Assembly (NCBI RefSeq): GCF_006345805.1
Contig: NW_021826747.1
Coordinates: 1-12,087, forward strand
Origin: Octopus sinensis
Taxonomy: Eukaryota
DNA length: 12,087 bases
Reading direction: 5' to 3'
The position numbers and the translations under genes are program-made. The notes beneath the pieces are model-generated. The model was not told the origin of the DNA. It saw nothing but the letters and a program-made list of their open reading frames with translations, and searched no databases. Positions 347 to 10,750 of the stretch are shown here, piece after piece (position 1 is the first letter of the stretch; the number at the start of each line of letters is the position of its first letter).

Positions 347-2248
347 TTAGGTCCACATTTCTCTCAAGGTACTAACGCTCTGTCGAGTATGCACACTGAC
401 ATTACACATCCTTCGGAGCATACTGGCTTCATTCCTCGCGAGCTTACGCATGTCCACAGCAGTCACAGCCCATGTTTCACTGCCATGTAGCATGGCTGTT
501 CGTACACATGCATCATACAGTCTGCCTTTTACTCTGAGTGAGAAGCCTTTAGTCACCAGCAGAGGTAAGAGCTCCCTGAACTTTGCTCGGTCTATTCTTA
601 CTCTAGCAGTTACACTTTCAGCGCACCCACTCCCACTACTGACTTGGTCACCTAGATAACGGAAGCTATCAACTACTTCTAGTTTTTCCTCCTGGAAAGT
701 GACGGAAGTTGTTTTCTGCAGATTTTCAGAGTTTATTGCTCCTGAGCATCTGCCACATACAAAAACTATCTTCCCAGTTAGCCTTCCTTTGACATTACTG
801 CACCTCTTATGTGTCCATAGCTTACACTGGATACATCTTATAGAGTTTCTACCTACACCTTTTCTACAGATCGAGCAGGGCCATCTTCCTGAAGACATTT
901 GTGGATTGTCTACCTTCCTACTTATTAGTACTTTGGTTTTAGCTAGGTTGACTCTAAGGCCCCTCGATTCTAATCCCTCCTTCCACATCTGGAACTTCTC
1001 CTCCAGTTCTGATAGTGACTCGGCAATTAGAGCAAGGTCGTCAGCATAGAGGAGCTCCCAGGGGCAACCTGTCTTGAATTCCTCCATAATTGCCTGGAGG
1101 ACTATGATAAATAGGAGGGGGCTAAGGACTGAACCCTGGTGGACCCCAACCTCTACATTGAATTCTTCTGTGTACATGTTGCCAACCCTAACCTTACTTA
1201 CGGCATCCCTGTACATGGCTTGCACAGCTCTCACCAGCCATTCATCTATCCCTTGTTTCCTCATTGACCACCAGATAAGGGATTGGGGGACCCTGTCAAA
1301 GGCTTTCTCTATGTCAACGAAAGCCAGGTACAGGGGCTTATCTTTGGCTAGGTATTTCTCCTGCAGCTGTCTCACCAGAAATATGGCATCAGTGGTGCTT
1401 TTCCCTGGCATGAAACCAAGCTGCATCTTCTCCAAGTTGACTCTCTCCCTAATCAGTTGGGCTATGACCCTCTCCGTAACGTTCATTACCTGATCCAACA
1501 GCTTCATACCTCTGTAATTATTTGTATGTCGGGCGTCTCCTTTACCTTTGTAGCAGCTTACTAGTATGCTGGTACCCCAGTAATTGGGTATGACTCCTTC
1601 GTGTATTACCTGGTTAACTATACGAGTGACTAGGTTATGGCCAACACTGCCAGATATTTTGAGCATGTCTGCAGTAATTCCTGATGGGCCTGGGGCTTTC
1701 CCTGTCTTCATGCTTCTAATTGCCTTAACTACCCAAGAATTGTCAACTCGGATGGCTGGTCCCACTGTTGGGTCAACATTCGGCAGACTCTCTTTATCCC
1801 ATTCATTTTCTTTATTCAGCAACCTTTCATGGTGGCATCTCCAAACCTTTCTCTTTGCATCCTCATTTAGTGCAAGTGAACCATCATCCATGCAGACACA
1901 TTTCTCTCCTAGCACATCACGATTCTCTCTCACACACTGTCTTGCAACACAAAATACCTCAAGTCTTTCATCCTCACGGCGCAGAACATTGGCAAATTTT
2001 TTCTTATTTGCTTCCCCTCTGGCTAAATAAACCTGTCTCCTAGCTTCCCTTCTGGCTGTCTGATACAATTCCCTGCTACCACCGTTCTTCCAGTCCCTCC
2101 AAGCCTGTTTCTTTTGTCTAACAGCTCTGTCAACCACATTGTTCCACCACCATGTTACTCTGGGTCCTGAGGGGACTTTGCTCCATCCACAGATCTGGTC
2201 AGTGGCTGTCAGCAGATTGTCCTGTAGAAATCTCCAGTTGTCTTCCAC
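347..2248 (-). pseudogene. LINE reverse transcriptase segment, 633 open codons (linker + RT + inserted PHD finger); bounded by frameshifts at both ends
   Basis: KAPGPSG, NYRGMKLL, QLGFMPGKSTTDAIF, FVDIEKAFDRV, GVHQGSVLSPLLF, YADD (1037-1048), LRVNLAKTKV, FRYLG (650-664). The GTG start and the TAA at 347-349 result from 1-nt losses; homologous sequence continues in other frames (…ASLNVEDNW upstream, DLRSISCGVQERRLRWYGHV downstream). Confidence 0.92.
746..877 (-). other. PHD-type zinc finger (Cys4-His-Cys3) embedded in the RT domain
   Basis: CSIC-x10-CIQC-x4-HKRC-x14-CGRC, 44 aa; all eight ligands present with PHD spacing. Confidence 0.85.
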
Positions 2249-2249
2249 A

Positions 2250-3088
2250 TTAAGTGAAGCATATCCCCTTTATTTTCGTAAAAGGCTTCGAGTAGTATAT
2301 CTCTAAATCTCTGTCCATTTGCAGGATCTTTAAGCTTCCAGACCCTCTCCTCCAAGGCTGGTCTTCTGGGCAACCATTTAGCTCTGATCCTGAAGTCGCT
2401 AACTACAATCTATGTTGAGGAGTACATTCTTCGCCTGGAAAGGTTTTGGCATTTATAAGCAGCCTTCTTTTCCTCTTTCTGGCGAGGATGTAGTCAATCT
2501 GGGTAGTGTGTCTGCCAGAACGGTAGGTGACTAGGTGAGAGGTGGGTTTCCTGAAGTTGGTATTGCAAACCATAAGGTCATTTGCATCGCAGAACTCCAG
2601 CAGCCTGGTTCCCTGCCCATTGCGAGAGCCAAAACCGTAGCCTCCATAAACGCCATAGAAGCCCCCCGACATGCCGTCCAACATGTCCATTGAAATCACC
2701 TGCCACAAAGAGAAGGTCACTGTCATTTGTCAACGAGGTAGTCCGCAATAGGGTGTCGTAGAATATGGGGAAGCACTAATCTAATCTTAAGTACTCTGTC
2801 ACTTACTCTGACTACCTCGATTACCTTATCTACCCATTTCTCCGCAAGAAGTATACCCACGCTTCCGACCCCGTCAGTGTTCCCTGCCCAGAAAATCTTG
2901 TACCTGTGTTCCTTGCCTTTGAGGAGCCTAGTGGAACCTCCTCTCCTCCTTACTTCCTGGATGCAGCATAAATTCACACGTCTTCGTTGAAGCAGCTCAA
3001 CAATCATTCCAGACCTACCTTTCAATGTGCCAACTCTGAGGGTGTAGGAGGTGTGGGCCTCTGAGACCCTGGGATGAGGGACAGCCAT
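2250..3088 (-). pseudogene. APE-type endonuclease domain and linker of the RTE LINE, frameshifted and internally deleted
   Basis: Likely start MAVPHPRV (ATG 3088-3086). Fragments in ORFs 2723-3130 and 2403-2726. Frame changes near 2765, 2665, 2404 and 2262. The SAYAPQ-type motif expected between IRLVL and FYDTLL is absent. Confidence 0.88.
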
Positions 3089-3242
3089 GTCATGTACCTG
3101 AAAAGAAAGCTTGCATTTGGCAGATTTCATATGGAAACACTAGACTACAACCTGCATACATTTCACAGTTTTTGCGCTATATGATCAAATAAACCCTACA
3201 TAGGGGTGCGGGGGGGGATAGTCAAGTAAGACAGAGGTAGAA

Positions 3243-3294: not shown

Positions 3295-3732
3295 ACGCGG
3301 TTGAAGATAATTCGTAGGGAATTCTCTGCAACAAAAATTACTGAAACAGCTAATGCCGAAATCGTGAGATAGAGTTGAAAGCTGAAACTTTGGGATTTGA
3401 GGAAAACATAATTTAAATAAATGAAAACCGCAGTGCTAAGTCGAAAGAGAGAGACAGTGAGTCGGTGGTGGGGTCAGAGCCTTAGGTGGTCAGGCGTTAA
3501 GTAAGTAATAAATACGACACGAGGAAGAAAGAATATTTTGTAAGGAATTCGGGGGAATGGAATAACAAAGGGATAACCTTGAAATAAAAGAAGAATAGAA
3601 ATATGCATGATCTTAAGACAGACAGGAAGCTATCGGTGCCATGTTTACAAGATAGAGAAATAGATAATAGAGAACGAGAGAGAAGGGGTTAGGGTTACGA
3701 ATCAACGCTTAAAAATATGAATGAACGAGGTT
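3295..3732. repeat. Direct repeat copy 1 (438 bp) of a duplicated LINE-upstream segment
   Basis: Aligns by eye to 3930-4346 with roughly a dozen substitutions, one 22-bp indel and a 1-bp G-run difference. Confidence 0.95.
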
Positions 3733-3882
3733 GAAAATTAAAATCGCTTAGCTGGTCATTTTTCTGAAATCCGTGTTTTGTCAGCAAGGAGATGTAAATC
3801 GAGTAGAGGGAAGAAACAGACCGTACGCTGGTTTATAAAGAGTTAGGGATTTGGGGGAGGGTGTATCAGGTGGTAACATGAA

Positions 3883-3886
<4 letters not shown>

Positions 3887-3920
<34 letters not shown>
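3887..3920. repeat. (GA)17 microsatellite
   Basis: Direct read of sequence. Confidence 0.97.
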
Positions 3921-3924
<4 letters not shown>

Positions 3925-3929
3925 CAGAC

Positions 3930-4346
3930 ACGAGGTTGAAGATAATTCGTAGGGAATTCTCTGCAACAAAAATTACTGAAACAGCTAATGCCGAAATCGT
4001 GAGATAGAGTTGAAAGTTGAAACTTTGGGATTTGAGGAAAACATAATTTAAATAAATGAAAATTGCTGTGCTAAGTCGAAAGAGAGAGACAGTGAGTCAG
4101 GGGGGGGGGTCAGAGCCTTAGGTGGTCAGGCGTTAAGTAAGTAATAAATACGACACGAGGAAGAAAGAATATTTTGTAAGGAATTCGGGGGAATGGAATA
4201 AAAGAGGAATAGAAAAATGCATGATCTTAAGACAGACAGGAAGCTATCAGTGCCATGTTTACAAGATAGAGAAATAGATAATAGAGAACGAGAGGGAAGG
4301 GGTTAAGGTTACGAATCAACGCTTAAAAATATGAATGAACAAGGTT
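3930..4346. repeat. Direct repeat copy 2 (417 bp) of a duplicated LINE-upstream segment
   Basis: Offset 635 from copy 1 at the left end; lacks caaagggataaccttgaaataa; ends at an (AT)6 tract at 4348-4359. Confidence 0.95.
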
Positions 4347-4456: not shown

Positions 4457-5030
4457 GGTTATTTGAAAACGCTATGAAAAATACCGTTATATAAAGGGAA
4501 ATTATTGTGTTATAACTCTGCTTGCCTGCGTACTTATACATCGCTTGCATTTTTCGTCATAAAAATTATATAAAAATACATAAAAATATATAAAATCTTC
4601 TTGGGACATAACATAGAAAGCATGTTTTATCTGTTTTCTTTAGGGGACCAAAAACATAACAGAAATTTAGTGACATGTGGGCATGATCCGAAAAGTTCTG
4701 TCCTTGTGTTTAGACATGTAGTAGGGTCTAAGCTGCTTTTCCAGATAAGCCATCTCTCCATGTCGCATAGACTGCACCTTCCGCTGCCGTTGGTATAGGG
4801 CTTACATCTGGCCAAAATCTTCCATTGTATGTTATAATCGACACCTTTATCTCTTAAAGACCAAATATAATTAGATAATTGTGTCGCTTTTCTTTTGTTC
4901 CAGTGCCTAAAGCTCAAAGTGTGGTTATTGAACCTGGCCTTGAAATTACCCTCTGTAAGGCCCACGTATTTCTTCGTCGAAACGGTGTCTTTAGTGGTTA
5001 TAGAGTTTAAGGTAGCTTCATATATGATGG

Positions 5031-5355
5031 TCTTGGACATGCAAGCTCCATTTAGCAGGCACAATTCTTTATTCCTGCATGAACAGCTGTTTTCTTGTTG
5101 TGTTTACACCCTCTTACTCACCCGAGGTGGCCTTCAATATAGGTAAATATTTCCTAGCACTGATAGATAGACATTTTCCAGTTAACCATACTTATAGGAA
5201 ACTCTTCAATAGACACAATTTAAAAATTAGTTTTAGTTCCACTACCAATTTTAAAAACATAATCAAACATAACATACAAAAAACACAACAAGAAAACAGC
5301 TGTTCATGCAGGAATAAAGAATTGTGCCCGCTAAATGGAGCTTGCATGTCCAAGA
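5031..5355. repeat. 75-bp inverted repeat (5031-5105 / 5281-5355, 1 mismatch) around a 175-bp spacer
   Basis: Reverse complement of 5031-5105 equals 5281-5355 except at position 5329. Confidence 0.96.
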
Positions 5356-5991
5356 TGGTGCCTTACTGCTCTTGAAAGAAACTACGTTGTAATTCCGGCA
5401 TTAAAAGTTGTTTTTTGAGGATGCTATTGAAATACTCCAGTCAATTCAGCACTTGACTAAGTTCTAGTATATTATTGATCCTTTTTTTATCAATTAGTGT
5501 CAATAATATAATGAAATCCGGCATGAAATATTAGTGATTTACAGTTGGAACTATGTGACACTAATCTATAATAATGAAAATATTTCTTTGGTTGAAGATC
5601 CACCATATATTATAAGCTTTTATATTGATTATAGAAACTGATAAGAGACAATCAGATAAAAGAAAATCTTGGATATTGTATGATTTAAATTCAACACAGT
5701 TAGACAATTAACTAACACTTCATCTCAGCTGAATAAACTTAACTTACATGTTTTTTTAGTCACAGCACAAGGCTAATTTACTATAGATGTGTACTAGCAC
5801 TGATTTTATCAACACTAAAGTAATAAAAAGTAAAATTGATTTCAGTAGTCTTTGAAATCTAGACCAGAATCCTGTACAACTCATCACTATTTATGCCAAC
5901 TCCTGTTATTTTATCACATTAGAAAATATTAAAATGGAAAGAGAAAAATCTTTCTTTGATAGCTGTTTTTTTTTTTTAATTTATGAAATAC

Positions 5992-6081
5992 ACTAATTAC
6001 TAATTATATTTTTCCCCTTTTTTTTTTTAGGTAAGTGTCATTTCTAAATGCATACAATATCAATTTTTAAAAGGTAAGTGT
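5992..6081 (+). promoter_or_regulatory. Candidate recursive splice site (3' ss fused to 5' ss) with a downstream second 5' ss delimiting a 43-nt RS-like exon
   Basis: ACTAAT twice (5992-5997, 5999-6004; TACTAAT at 5998-6004), 21-nt pure pyrimidine run (6008-6028), AG 6029-6030, GTAAGT 6031-6036, AAG|GTAAGT at 6071-6079. Confidence 0.6.
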
Positions 6082-6767
6082 TTGGTAGGTACGGTTTCTT
6101 AAATAATGCCCTGGCAGCTTTCACTGCCTAAGCTATAACTTTATTTTTTACTCTGATCTACCATTGGACAAGTAGAAAAGTTTTTTTCCCTCTACTTGCC
6201 TACATATGCATGTTACATAGGTCAGTTCTATCCAGAGTTATTCATTTCTCATGTTTAACTTTGAAGGCATAGCCAAGTACATATTATATATAAAGTTGTC
6301 CCTCAGTTTGCATGGTACTGTATGCACAGTTTCATTTTAGTACAGTTTAGCTTTCGTGCAAATTTTTTACTATTTTTGATATTATAGCTATTTCTGTTTC
6401 AGTTTTACATTTCCTTTTATTTTACCTTTGTTTTCATACTCTGATAATGAGGTAGACTGTACATTTGTTAGAATCATCTCATACTAGCAAACGCACTTGT
6501 CCTTTGGATGGTTTAAGTTGCTCTGGTGGTATTTTTTTCACCAAATGATTGGACTACCAACAAAATTTATGAGTAGTATGGCAATCTATGTATCCGATTA
6601 ACTTAGGAACAGAAACCAAATTGAAGGCTGGTTACTGTGGAGGTCATTGCAAGCGATGCAAAATAGAGCTACTGAAGTGTTTTGGGAGTAGATTATGGAT
6701 ATAATGACTACAAAATATAGTTGTTTTACATAAAAGTGAAATTTCTTGTCAGAAACAGCCACATATA

Positions 6768-7173
6768 TCTTTCTCTTTTCTCTTTTACTTATTTCAGTCA
6801 GTTGACTGCGGCCATGCTGGAGCACCGCCTTTAATTGAGCAACTCGACCCCGGGACTTATACTTTTTGTAAGCCCAGTACTTATTCTATCGGTCTCTTTT
6901 GCCGAACCGCTAAGTAACAGGGACATAAACACACCAGCATTGGTTGTCAAGCAATGCTAGAGGGACAAACACAGACACACAAACACACACACATACATAT
7001 ACATATATACAACAGGCTTCTTTCAGTTTCCGTCTACCAAATCCACTCACAAGGCTTTGGTCGGCCCGAGGCTATAGCAGAAGACACTCGCCCAAGGTGC
7101 CACGCAGTGGGACTGAACCTGGAACCATGTGGGTGGTAGACAAGCTACTTACCACACAGCCACTCCTGCGCCT
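6768..7173 (-). mobile_element. tRNA-derived SINE, full length, resembling the abundant octopod SINE family
   Basis: Pol III A box TGGCTGTGTGG (7162-7152) and B box GGTTCAGTCCC (7119-7109); CCTTGGGCGAG core-like segment; internal (TG/TA)n at ~6968-7011; A/G-rich simple tail (AAAAGAGAAAAGAGAAAGA). Family assignment from recall only. No TSD visible. Confidence 0.88.
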
Positions 7174-7650
7174 GGTGTAAGGAAATTGAAAGAAGACGTT
7201 GAAACTTTCCCCTGTGAGTTTATTTTATTCAATTTCAAAGGGAGCTATTTTTTCGGAGAGAAGTATGATTGGTATGTTCAGAAATGGCAATATAAAGGAA
7301 TGTATTTGCTATGTTGCTTACAGTGTGCAACCACTCTGAAATTGACTTCAGGTAATGAAAAATGAAGACATGAAAAGTTTTACTTCAGTTCATGAATGCT
7401 GCTTTTAATTTTTAGCAGTTTGCAATGAAAAGATATTGTGTTCAAAATATCATAATGGATGGGTAAATAAGCATCCTTAAAGTGAAACAACGTATTGGTA
7501 GGTAAACAAAGGTATCAACAAATAGAAGAGAAGGAAGGGAACATCATTTTTCAAGTAACTCAGAATAGGTAAAAGTAAGCTTGCCAAATTTAAATTCAGT
7601 TTAAATATGGAGATTGAGATTGTTTGGAATTGGATATCCATTGCATACAG

Positions 7651-9687
7651 TAGGGGTGTCAAACTCAATCACACAAGGGGCCAAAACTCAAAGCACACTT
7701 TAGGTTGCAGGTCAAACAAGATAAACATTTATTGAACAGACTAAAACTTTTTGAACATGAACATGTTTTAAAACAGATGGTATATAATTTTATTCCAAAA
7801 ATGAACTAACTTTAACTTAGATTATTTAAAATATTTTGCTCTGCATGAAAATATCTTCTGTCAAAATGATAAAAATTTAAAATAGAACATGTAAAAAAAA
7901 AAAAAGAAAATATAAATAAAAAATGTGCTTTTTAGTGAAAATTATAATAATAAATTAAAACTTTCGATTTTCTTTATGCAATTTTGTCTGACCTACATAC
8001 TTGGCATCTTTTCTTGGCAACAAGTTTATTGATATTTGGGGCAAGGTTCTGTGTTGTTGAGATTCTCAGGATGGATTTCAGGTGTTCATCTGTGAGATGA
8101 CTCTTATGTGACGTTTTATTCATCTTCATCACAGAGAACAGCCGCTTGCACAGATAAGTGCTTCCAAGCAAAGACAGTATTTGAGCTGAATGTAAACGGA
8201 GCTGGGGCATTGCTTCAGGTATGAAGCGAGTGACCTGTGCGGGCCCCACACAGTCATACTTTGCTTTTAATGTCCCGTTACACTGCAGTTCTATCAACTC
8301 CATTTGAATCTGTACAGATGCAGTTTCCATATTGATGGCAAATGGATTGCAAAGCAACTCGAAATTATTTCTGTACTTCAAAGTCACTAAAGTGCCATGT
8401 GAATTCAGTGTGGAGCACACTCAATTTTTCACCACACATTGCAGGTACTCCATCTGTTGTAAGTCCAAGTTTGCCCCAAGGCAGATTCATGTCAGTTACA
8501 CTCTGACATATTTTTTCAAAAAGGTCCTTTCCTGTTGTTGTCCCGTGCACCAATTTAATGTCCGAAATTTCCTGCATGACGAACGCTCCACTGATGACGA
8601 TAGCCAGCTGTGCCATATCAGTCAAGTTGTCTCATTCACAGCAAGAGAGTATGCAAGAAAATCTTTTCCTTTTTCAATCAACTGTATTTTCAAATTCGTG
8701 GCCATCTCACACACCCGATCAGCAACTGTATTTCTGCTAATACTTACATTAGCAAACAGTTGCTTCTTGTCTAGACACATTTTTATCACACAGCTCTTCA
8801 TCAGCTGTCCTTCGGTAAATAGCCGGACTGATTTTGCAATCTCCTCTGCCACAATAAAATTTGCTATAACAGCAGCTTCACTTTGTAATTTTGCTTTGGT
8901 TAAAAAGAGTCTGTTGTAATGTAAGATTCCTCTTCAGCTCATCTACCTTTTGTTGCTTCTGCTCAGCAGTGAAGTATTTATACTTGATGTTTTGTCTCAG
9001 TGGCATTTGAGATTAAACTTTTTAATTACAGCAACATTAGCACCACAATTAAGACACACAGGTTTGCCTTCAATGTCAGTAAACATGTACTCGGTTTCCT
9101 ACTGAATTTGAAAGGCTCTGTTTTCAGCACCAACTTTCCTCTTGGCCATTAATATAGACAGCTACTACTACTGAATGATGTCATGTGAAAATGATCACCA
9201 GAAAGAAAGGTAAGGTGGCTATTGCAGTGCATTATGGGATTAGTAGATTTTGCATCATCAGTGCTTCACAATACACAGAGAATCGAAGGAGGTGCTTCCC
9301 AGCATGTTTTGTTGCAGTTACAATTAAGACTTGTGACTGTGTTATGCCTCTTTAAACTGTTTTTTTTTTTGTACAGACAGGGTGTAATAGTTACAGTGGT
9401 GTTGTTTTTTGTTGTGTATTAAATCTTTGCTACTTTTGATGACGCCCTTAGTAAGAAAGGTAGTACAGTCAGTGCTATATATAATGTAATGGCCTGCTTT
9501 AGCTACACACTATGTATTTGTAGTGGTAACAAGAAGGCATGGGTATTGCTGAGGGCAGCAAAATACTCTATTTGCTGATGTTGCTGTTTCAACCAATTTC
9601 ATGCTGATATCAAAATGGTCCCATGGGCCAAATGAAATTGCTGCATGGGCCGGAAGTGGCCCGCGGGCCAAGAGTTTAACATATCTG
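7651..9687 (-). mobile_element. hAT DNA transposon (Charlie/Buster-like), non-autonomous deletion derivative
   Basis: TIRs TAGGGGTGTCAAACTC (7651-7666) and CAGATATGTTAAACTC (reverse complement of 9672-9687), 11/16 identical. Degenerate 8-bp TSD gcatacag / gtggacag (5/8). GGGCC-rich subterminal repeats at 9620-9670. Confidence 0.88.
7974..9149 (-). pseudogene. hAT transposase of the GTF2IRD2/EPM2AIP1-like (Buster/Charlie) type, with stops, frameshifts and a large internal deletion
   Basis: MAKRKVGAENRAF…KPVCLNC…H (BED-like), LFANVSISRNTVADRV, YSLAVNETT, MAQLAI, GLTTDGVPAMCGEK joined directly to LSVL…EF, NPF, LIELQ, GSTYLCKRLFSVMK…K…LTDEHL…LRI. Confidence 0.9.
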
Positions 9688-9889
9688 GTGGACAGTTGAA
9701 ATAAATATATACACTTTTATAACATTCACTTTTATAATATTCTCTGACCAAGTAATAATACACAATTACAACATAATAAATAAATAATAACAGGTGGGCA
9801 GTCAAAATAAATAGACAAAATCCTTTCACATTTATAATATTCTCTCACCAAGTAATAATACACAATTACAACATATAAATAAATAATAA
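9687..9889. repeat. Imperfect tandem duplication of a ~100-106 bp AT-rich unit
   Basis: 9725-9790 vs 9825-9889 nearly identical (ttcac.tttataatattctct.accaagtaataatacacaattacaacat…); 9687-9707 vs 9793-9813 also align. Confidence 0.85.
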
Positions 9890-9970: not shown

Positions 9971-10026
9971 GTGTTCCATGACTTGTTCCTATGGAGTGCC
10001 CACTATAGGAACAAGTCATGGAACAC
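9971..10026. repeat. Perfect 22-bp inverted repeat with a 12-nt loop at the 5' end of PLE2
   Basis: gtgttccatgacttgttcctat (9971-9992) / ataggaacaagtcatggaacac (10005-10026). Confidence 0.97.
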
Positions 10027-10750
10027 AAAAAAGAAAATAGGGAAGGCCCACTCTTGGTATGATAGCCATAAATACCAGAATGTTCGTTGACACCACCCCT
10101 GGAGGTGAACTGGCGTACCGCTTTAGAAGGACCCTAGACAAACTTAAACTAAGGATTAAGGTTGTTGAAAAGCCAGGCAACCCTATCAAATCTATAATCG
10201 GTAGAACCTATCCTTTTAGTAGAACCCCCTGTACAGATAAGTACTGTACTGTATGTAGATTTAGCCCACAAACAAACTGTAAAGCCAGAAATGTAGTCTA
10301 TAGTATAAGATGTATAGAGGGACTATGCAGTAACAAGACAACGACATACGTAGGGGAAATGGCAAGAAGCATAGGAGAGTGGGTAAATGACATTGGAGAG
10401 AACTCAAGGAAGGTAAAAGCTCATCGATTCTGTACCAACACGCGAAACAGGAAAACGGGGGATCAATCAACAACATAGAACTTAAAATATTGTCCACACA
10501 TAGAACAGATGCAACAATCAGACAAATTACAGAAGCTACACACATAATAGAAGATAAACCTTGCCTGAACAGGAAACTGGAATGGAACACTAGCACACAC
10601 CGCAACCTATGACAGTAGAGGATCCCAATAAACTGGTTACAATATAAACAAAACCGAAAACATAATAAATAAAATACATAGATAAATAAACAAATAGAAA
10701 TAAATAACTATATAAGTTTTTTTTTTGTTTAATTTAAAAGATTTTTTTTG

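Follow-up and report, generated by a model that had tools for sequence, protein, structure and literature searches.

In Drosophila, more than 500 intronic ratchet points have been described (PMC8605326), the first genome-wide survey having reported 197 of them in 130 introns (bioRxiv 10.1101/006163). The fly host introns span 11-133 kb and are removed in recursive segments of at least 2.6 kb, and the ratchet points within them carry an especially prominent pyrimidine tract, with TT at positions -5/-6 in 196 of 197 cases (bioRxiv 10.1101/006163). Their function further requires a cryptic RS-exon, some 50 nt long, poorly conserved and not in frame, that runs up to a downstream donor. Of the two donors, that of the ratchet point is generally the stronger, and flies switch to full inclusion of the exon once this ratchet donor is weakened (PMC8605326). 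Recursive splicing is also established in vertebrates, where the RS-exon has been presented as a ‘binary switch’ (PMC5126111), and the RS-exon mechanism has been described as unified across metazoans (PMC8605326). In a motif-based comparison of genomes that included no mollusc, the large introns of five invertebrates, namely sea urchin (8 fold), bee, beetle, mosquito, and fly (22 fold), had ratchet-type sites 4-22 fold enriched on the sense strand, as against a sense/antisense ratio of ~1 in vertebrates and a control-strand background of ~0.1 per 100 kb (PMC2773006). Since enrichment was found in every invertebrate tested, sea urchin included, recursive splicing outside insects is to be expected. 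Our literature search on recursive splicing in cephalopods, molluscs, and invertebrates returned no substantive mollusc report, which agrees with the remark of an earlier note on the present DNA that it was aware of no characterisation of the process in molluscs.

The locus considered here lies near the middle of a 12,087-nt stretch of octopus DNA (the window). The earlier note had proposed it as a candidate recursive splice site with an RS-exon in a probable cephalopod intron, and we found that the sequence-level features of such a site are all present and in register on the plus strand, as follows:

5992 to 6006, plus strand: 7-nt tandem, ACTAATT twice, containing two CTAAT branch-point-like motifs
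5996, plus strand: second candidate branch A, at -34 from the junction
5998 to 6004, plus strand: TACTAAT, with the candidate branch A at 6003, at -27 from the junction between 6030 and 6031
6009 to 6028, plus strand: purine-free polypyrimidine tract TTTTTCCCCTTTTTTTTTTT, 20 nt, T5 C4 T11
6029 to 6030, plus strand: acceptor AG, with the junction after 6030 (TAG/GTAAGT at 6028-6036)
6031 to 6038, plus strand: candidate recursive donor GTAAGTGT, the intronic half of a 5' splice site
6031 to 6073, plus strand: candidate RS-exon, AT-rich, 43 nt (3 x 14 + 1), frame-shifting
6071 to 6081, plus strand: downstream donor AAG/GTAAGTGT (AAG/GTAAGT at 6071-6079), with the junction between 6073 and 6074
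6085 to 6094, plus strand: weak donor-like motifs read from the sequence, G/GTAGGT at 6085 and G/GTACGG at 6089

Direct reading of positions 5800-6300, together with a script, located the described sequence where the earlier note had placed it. Its account of the TACTAAT with the A at 6003 (27 nt ahead of the junction), of TAG/GTAAGT at 6030/6031 with a second AAG/GTAAGT 43 nt further on, and of a frame shift plus stops in two of the three frames of the 43-nt segment could be reproduced in full; the pyrimidine run, which had been given as 21 nt, measures 20 nt (6009-6028). This copy of TACTAAT is the only one on the plus strand of the window (script check), and pyrimidine runs of at least 20 nt number two in all on either strand, the tract being one of them. 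The tract continues directly into the splice sites as T5C4T11-AG/GTAAGT (6009-6036), so that the acceptor and donor are juxtaposed in the form (Y)nAG/GTAAGT, and the T residues at -5 and -6 (TT at 6025-6026) supply the dinucleotide that is typical of fly ratchet points. The short, out-of-frame candidate RS-exon (6031-6073) leads to its own downstream donor, AAG/GTAAGT; two of its frames contain stops and frame 1 is open (VSVISKCIQYQFLK), and with these stops and the frameshift its inclusion would be that of a poison exon, a property that is relevant only if the host intron interrupts a coding sequence. The donors at 6031 and 6074 do not differ in their intronic half (GTAAGTGT) and have the 10-mer AGGTAAGTGT in common, with T5A ahead of each. 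The weak GT motifs at 6085 and 6089 may be extra U1-binding sites, or they may be meaningless.

Our tentative reading is that a plus-strand octopus pre-mRNA carries here, most likely within one of its long introns, an RS-exon cassette competent for splicing, and we would put the chance that this is correct at a little under even. Under this reading, U2 snRNP and U2AF would recognise the branch site A6003, the 20-nt tract, and AG6030, while U1 bound at 6074, together with the upstream signals, would define the 43-nt exon 6031-6073. Joining of the upstream exon to G6031 would then remove the first part of the intron and regenerate a 5' splice site (exon end/GTAAGTGT), the donor at 6031 being re-formed by the ligation itself. 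The regenerated 6031 donor would compete with the donor at 6074. If 6031 were used, the 43 nt would leave with the rest of the intron without a trace (recursive, or ‘zero-nucleotide’, splicing), and if 6074 were used, a frame-shifting 43-nt poison or alternative exon would be retained in the mRNA.

The balance between the two donors is the atypical feature of this arrangement. The donor at 6074 has a favourable exonic AAG, while the exonic half of the donor at 6031 would be set by whichever upstream exon is joined to it, so that 6031 is equal to 6074 at best. Given equal intronic halves and the AAG at 6074, the outcome should depend on the last bases of the upstream exon, and the sequence accordingly predicts partial or switch-like inclusion of the 43 nt, in the manner of the vertebrate binary switch (PMC5126111), rather than a fully silent ratchet point. 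In such a switch, correct upstream exons would permit traceless, stepwise removal of the intron, and cryptic upstream exons or promoters would end in inclusion of the 43-nt poison exon. A fuller proposal goes further: no recursive splice site would have been identified before this one in a mollusc or any other member of Lophotrochozoa, its two donors would be equal and of maximal strength, and it would act as a switch governed by how the upstream exon ends; this proposal we consider doubtful. Points that speak against the cassette reading as a whole are that the protein search described below gave no gene around the site, that a perfect downstream donor is atypical of a silent ratchet point, that the second donor may be a small duplication, and that cephalopod genomes, being large and repeat-rich, could behave in the vertebrate manner, with a sense/antisense ratio of ~1. 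RNA folding of 5985-6110 (z = 0.29) yielded no structure able to bias donor choice.

We then consider whether a host gene is visible around the site. Outside the transposons, every stretch of 33 aa or more that is free of stops was joined end to end into one concatenated query (3,396 aa), which passes over exons shorter than 33 aa and non-coding ones. A search of 5.8 billion proteins with this query gave 0 matches; the ORFs of the window themselves were likewise not present in the protein collection. A 12-kb stretch with no detectable coding exon fits a long intron, and it equally fits intergenic DNA. With at least 6 kb of the window on each side of the site, these 12 kb lacking a detectable coding exon leave room both for a long intron and for recursive segments of the fly length (2.6 kb or more). 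As for the strand, the LINE, SINE, and hAT elements of the window share a minus-strand orientation. Retroelements in introns are in general more often found opposite to the host gene, and given this bias, the orientation of these elements weakly fits a gene on the plus strand.

The window as a whole is a transposon mosaic, with the following elements around the site:

~347 to 3130, minus strand: LINE, with an intact 633-aa reverse transcriptase plus PHD-finger ORF at 347-2248
2403 to 2726 and 2723 to 3130, minus strand: upstream ORFs of the LINE, frameshifted, probably its endonuclease part
4627 to 5064, minus strand, and 5079 to 5375, plus strand: GIY-YIG-type nuclease ORF fragments
6764 to 7174, minus strand: SINE that contains an (AC)n/(AT)n tract and shares 89% identity over 424 nt with the O. 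sinensis copy at L001:17059-17480
7646 to 9687, minus strand: decayed hAT of the GTF2IRD2/FAM200 type, with frameshifts and an internal deletion

The site itself occupies a 1.4-kb AT-rich stretch (5380-6763, 26-31% GC) between a GIY-YIG fragment and the SINE. No repeat of 5380-6763 was found within the window, and 5380-6765 had no significant match in 73 kb of Octopus DNA, which consisted of three annotated, non-orthologous loci (one from O. sinensis GCA_006345805.1 and two from O. vulgaris GCA_951406725.2). The earlier note's description of the DNA as non-repetitive therefore holds within the reach of these comparisons, and its attribution to a cephalopod is borne out by the SINE and hAT, whose DNA matches the O. 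sinensis and O. vulgaris loci at 83-94% nucleotide identity and marks the window as octopod DNA. In the search for RNA families, none reached the Rfam gathering score, and over 5400-7400 a threshold of E≤10 gave only chance-level matches, on which grounds we reject a structured RNA at the site; the tRNA search found no tRNA. A minus-strand U1 snRNA gene or pseudogene, considered in view of the two copies of ACTTACCT, was likewise rejected, there being no Rfam match to the U1 covariance model beyond the 5' octamer, either at the gathering score or, over 5400-7400, at E≤10.

Several of the surrounding elements deserve description in their own right. The closest proteins to the LINE reverse transcriptase in the 5.8-billion-protein collection are only 55% identical, and with best relatives this distant, the LINE family seems to be absent from the annotated or assembled data searched. 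An unclassified octopus repeat (88-648) overlaps the 3' end of the LINE region; its parts 88-344 and 491-648 match one and the same O. sinensis place (L001:2097-2513) at 82-85%, in opposite orientations. Beyond the LINE, a ~635-bp unit is duplicated in tandem (3295-4346, 95-96% identity in three collinear blocks), and this tandem includes an (AG)20 microsatellite (3882-3921) and has strongly positive GC and AT skew. A 75-nt inverted repeat (5031-5105 and 5281-5355, 99% complementary) links the two GIY-YIG fragments, and the pair looks like a recent hairpin-like inversion or duplication in a Penelope-like or other GIY-YIG element. A 139-aa, cysteine-rich, ATG-initiated ORF on the plus strand (10059-10478; CTDKYCTVCRF...CIEGLC...YVGE) resembles the zinc-finger plus GIY-YIG region of the 4627-5064 fragment; it had no Pfam match, and, searched as part of the concatenated query, none in the protein collection.

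In the 73 kb of Octopus DNA, as many as 12 matches overlap the SINE (6764-7174), which we take to be the common octopus SINE; no tRNA was found within it by ARAGORN or Rfam, and its sequence was not found in the literature search. The hAT DNA is 82-85% identical over ~2 kb to O. sinensis and O. vulgaris copies, and the encoded protein is ~70% identical to many teleost proteins and to Octopus proteins alike, which hints at horizontal transfer of the family between fishes and cephalopods. The protein similarities of the LINE and hAT left the organism ambiguous, and it was the DNA comparison with the Octopus loci that settled it. Beyond the hAT, copies of a 51-nt segment, 96% identical, recur at a spacing of 100 nt (9725-9875), and nearby the arms of a perfect 22-nt inverted repeat (9971-9992 and 10005-10026), set 12 nt apart, may mark a transposon terminus or a hairpin.

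Splice sites were scored with an approximate metazoan weight matrix drawn from general knowledge, which serves for ranking only. On this scale, the acceptor at 6030 ranks first of the 1,547 AG dinucleotides on both strands (12.7 bits, the next best reaching 8.8), the donor at 6074 is at the top of the 1,371 GT dinucleotides on both strands, and the donor at 6031 is third among those on the plus strand. The window contains two copies of AGGTAAGT, both at this site, where 0.57 would be expected, and one instance of Y12-N-YAG/GTRAGT, a pattern that appeared in 0 of 200 shuffles. For expectations at the genome scale, we simulated 200 Mb with an order-4 Markov model, for which 63 kb of octopus DNA served as training data. 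Per Gb of strand, this null gives ~17,700 copies of AGGTAAGT and ~10 copies of (Y≥12)AGGTAAGT, or ~90 in a more lenient form, and an empirical product of pyrimidine-run density and base composition gives roughly 170 sites of the (Y≥12)AGGTAAGT type per 2.7-Gb genome. The second donor raises a separate question, that of local repetition. Over 85 kb of octopus DNA, the share of positions at which a non-simple k-mer is met again within 100 nt is 1.4% for 8-mers and 0.67% for 10-mers, where independence would give ~0.2% or less. Local k-mer recurrence in octopus DNA is 5-70x commoner than independence predicts, and the second donor is less surprising than it would be under independence. Taken together, the full composite is expected from neutral sequence at roughly 0.1-2 per 2.7-Gb genome, an estimate in which the branch heptamer is not counted, and from this figure we consider that the arrangement is probably not due to chance; the branch heptamer adds support beyond that estimate.

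These figures bear directly on the most serious alternative, neutral coincidence, in which a T-rich run, common in this AT-rich genome, happens to abut AGGTAAGT, the second donor arises by duplication or chance, and the DNA is intergenic, antisense, or untranscribed. Its ingredients are not rare: pyrimidine runs of 12 nt or longer are common, 21 being counted per 24 kb of strand, at least two copies of AGGTAAGT fall within a window in 23 of 200 shuffles, the 10-mer shared with its T5A belongs to the class of non-simple 10-mers with the recurrence given above, and at relaxed stringency the control-strand density of ~0.1 ratchet-like motifs per 100 kb amounts to thousands per large genome (PMC2773006). 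The protein search, moreover, gave no gene to host the site. The second donor may be a small duplication rather than a selected feature, but the local alignment of the two donor copies extends over only 18 nt, with a score that was reached in 17 of 500 shuffles, which makes a weak case for duplication. Against the coincidence stands the expectation of only ~0.1-2 composites per genome even under the least favourable null, and a consensus branch heptamer at the right distance would have to be a further coincidence. We therefore regard the arrangement as possible by pure coincidence, yet improbable, and the neutral account as a whole as unlikely, if a contender to be taken seriously. A different account would make 6031-6073 an ordinary 43-nt exon (alternative, poison, or lncRNA) of an unannotated, non-coding or UTR transcript, spliced in at 6030 and out at 6074 with no re-splicing, the likeness of its first six bases to a donor being fortuitous. 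A very strong acceptor and a perfect donor 43 nt apart are what such an exon would look like, one of its frames is open, the regenerated donor can be no stronger than the one at 6074 (a balance that, in the donor-competition model, tips the outcome towards inclusion), and thousands of expressed mammalian exons start with donor-like sequence (PMC8605326). A perfect GTAAGT at the exon start, however, is expected in fewer than 1/1,000 exons (an estimate from base composition), and once ligated it would be a strong 5' splice site that is hard to silence, so that the exon would itself act as an RS-exon; the length of 43 nt is also not divisible by three, and the segment is AT-rich with no detectable coding signal. 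An ordinary exon thus appears to us quite improbable.

The transposon content of the window suggests one more origin, namely that the tract is the antisense A-rich tail of a minus-strand retroposon extending from 6029 on, or part of a low-copy repeat. Read on the minus strand, the tract is A11 G4 A5 and tail-like, the window is dense in transposons that lie mostly on the minus strand, and nearly half of octopus genomes is repeat. If the motif were derived in this way, it would reflect the element and not selection in the host, with exonisation still possible, as for antisense Alu. Yet no target-site duplication was found, as 5970-6010 shares no k-mer of 10 nt or longer with 6037-7800, and the segment carries no tRNA-like or other RNA-family signal and no within-window repeat. 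The stretch 5380-6765 is also unmatched in the 73 kb of Octopus DNA in which the SINE has up to 12 matches, a comparison that low-copy families could escape. We rate a transposon by-product as very unlikely. Returning to the RS-exon cassette, we consider the locus a good candidate, judged on its sequence, for a known kind of site in a phylum with no reported recursive splicing.

In coleoid cephalopods, genomes are large, introns are very long, and RNA is extensively processed in neurons, and, to our knowledge, how very long cephalopod introns are spliced accurately has not been studied. If the site is real, the RS-exon mechanism of flies and vertebrates operates in lophotrochozoans as well, which would argue that it is ancestral to bilaterians; a unified RS-exon mechanism would then reach a third major animal lineage with very long neuronal introns. 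The locus would also offer a concrete case of donor competition in which both donors are optimal. Its main value is as a seed for a genome-wide analysis of sense/antisense enrichment and for the re-analysis of octopus total RNA-seq. Of the interpretation in the earlier note, then, the sequence anatomy and the cephalopod origin stand; the combination of fly and vertebrate signatures to which it pointed is not a new one, being already part of the unified fly/mammal model (PMC8605326).

Among the described systems, the non-insect invertebrate predictions (Shepard, McCreary and Fedorov 2009, PMC2773006) resemble the octopus candidate in being motif-only and in concerning invertebrates with large introns, but they constitute a genome-wide statistic, whereas the octopus candidate is a single locus. 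The vertebrate cases (Sibley 2015; Blazquez 2018, PMC6224609; PMC5126111) come from long neuronal genes, in whose very long introns they are located, have RNA evidence behind them, and involve regulation by the exon junction complex, and the fly sites lie in long introns, show ultraconservation of the acceptor/donor junction, and have saw-tooth, junction, and lariat RNA evidence, whereas the octopus site is known from its sequence alone. With the vertebrate sites it shares YAG/GT, a strong acceptor, and a competing downstream donor, and, as in vertebrate RS-exons, stops and a frameshift would make a poison exon of the segment if it were included, with regeneration of a donor by the upstream exon deciding the outcome. 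The fly ratchet points (Hatton 1998; Burnette 2005; Duff 2015; Joseph, Kondo and Lai 2018; Joseph et al. 2021, PMC8605326) differ in that their RS-exon donor is generally the weaker of the two, where here the downstream donor is at least as strong as the ratchet donor can be, and in that the present site belongs to the phylum Mollusca. In other respects the likeness to the fly sites is extensive, comprising (Y)nAG/GTAAGT, the pyrimidine tract, TT at -5/-6, an out-of-frame cryptic exon of ~50 nt with a downstream donor, and the absence of a coding exon nearby.
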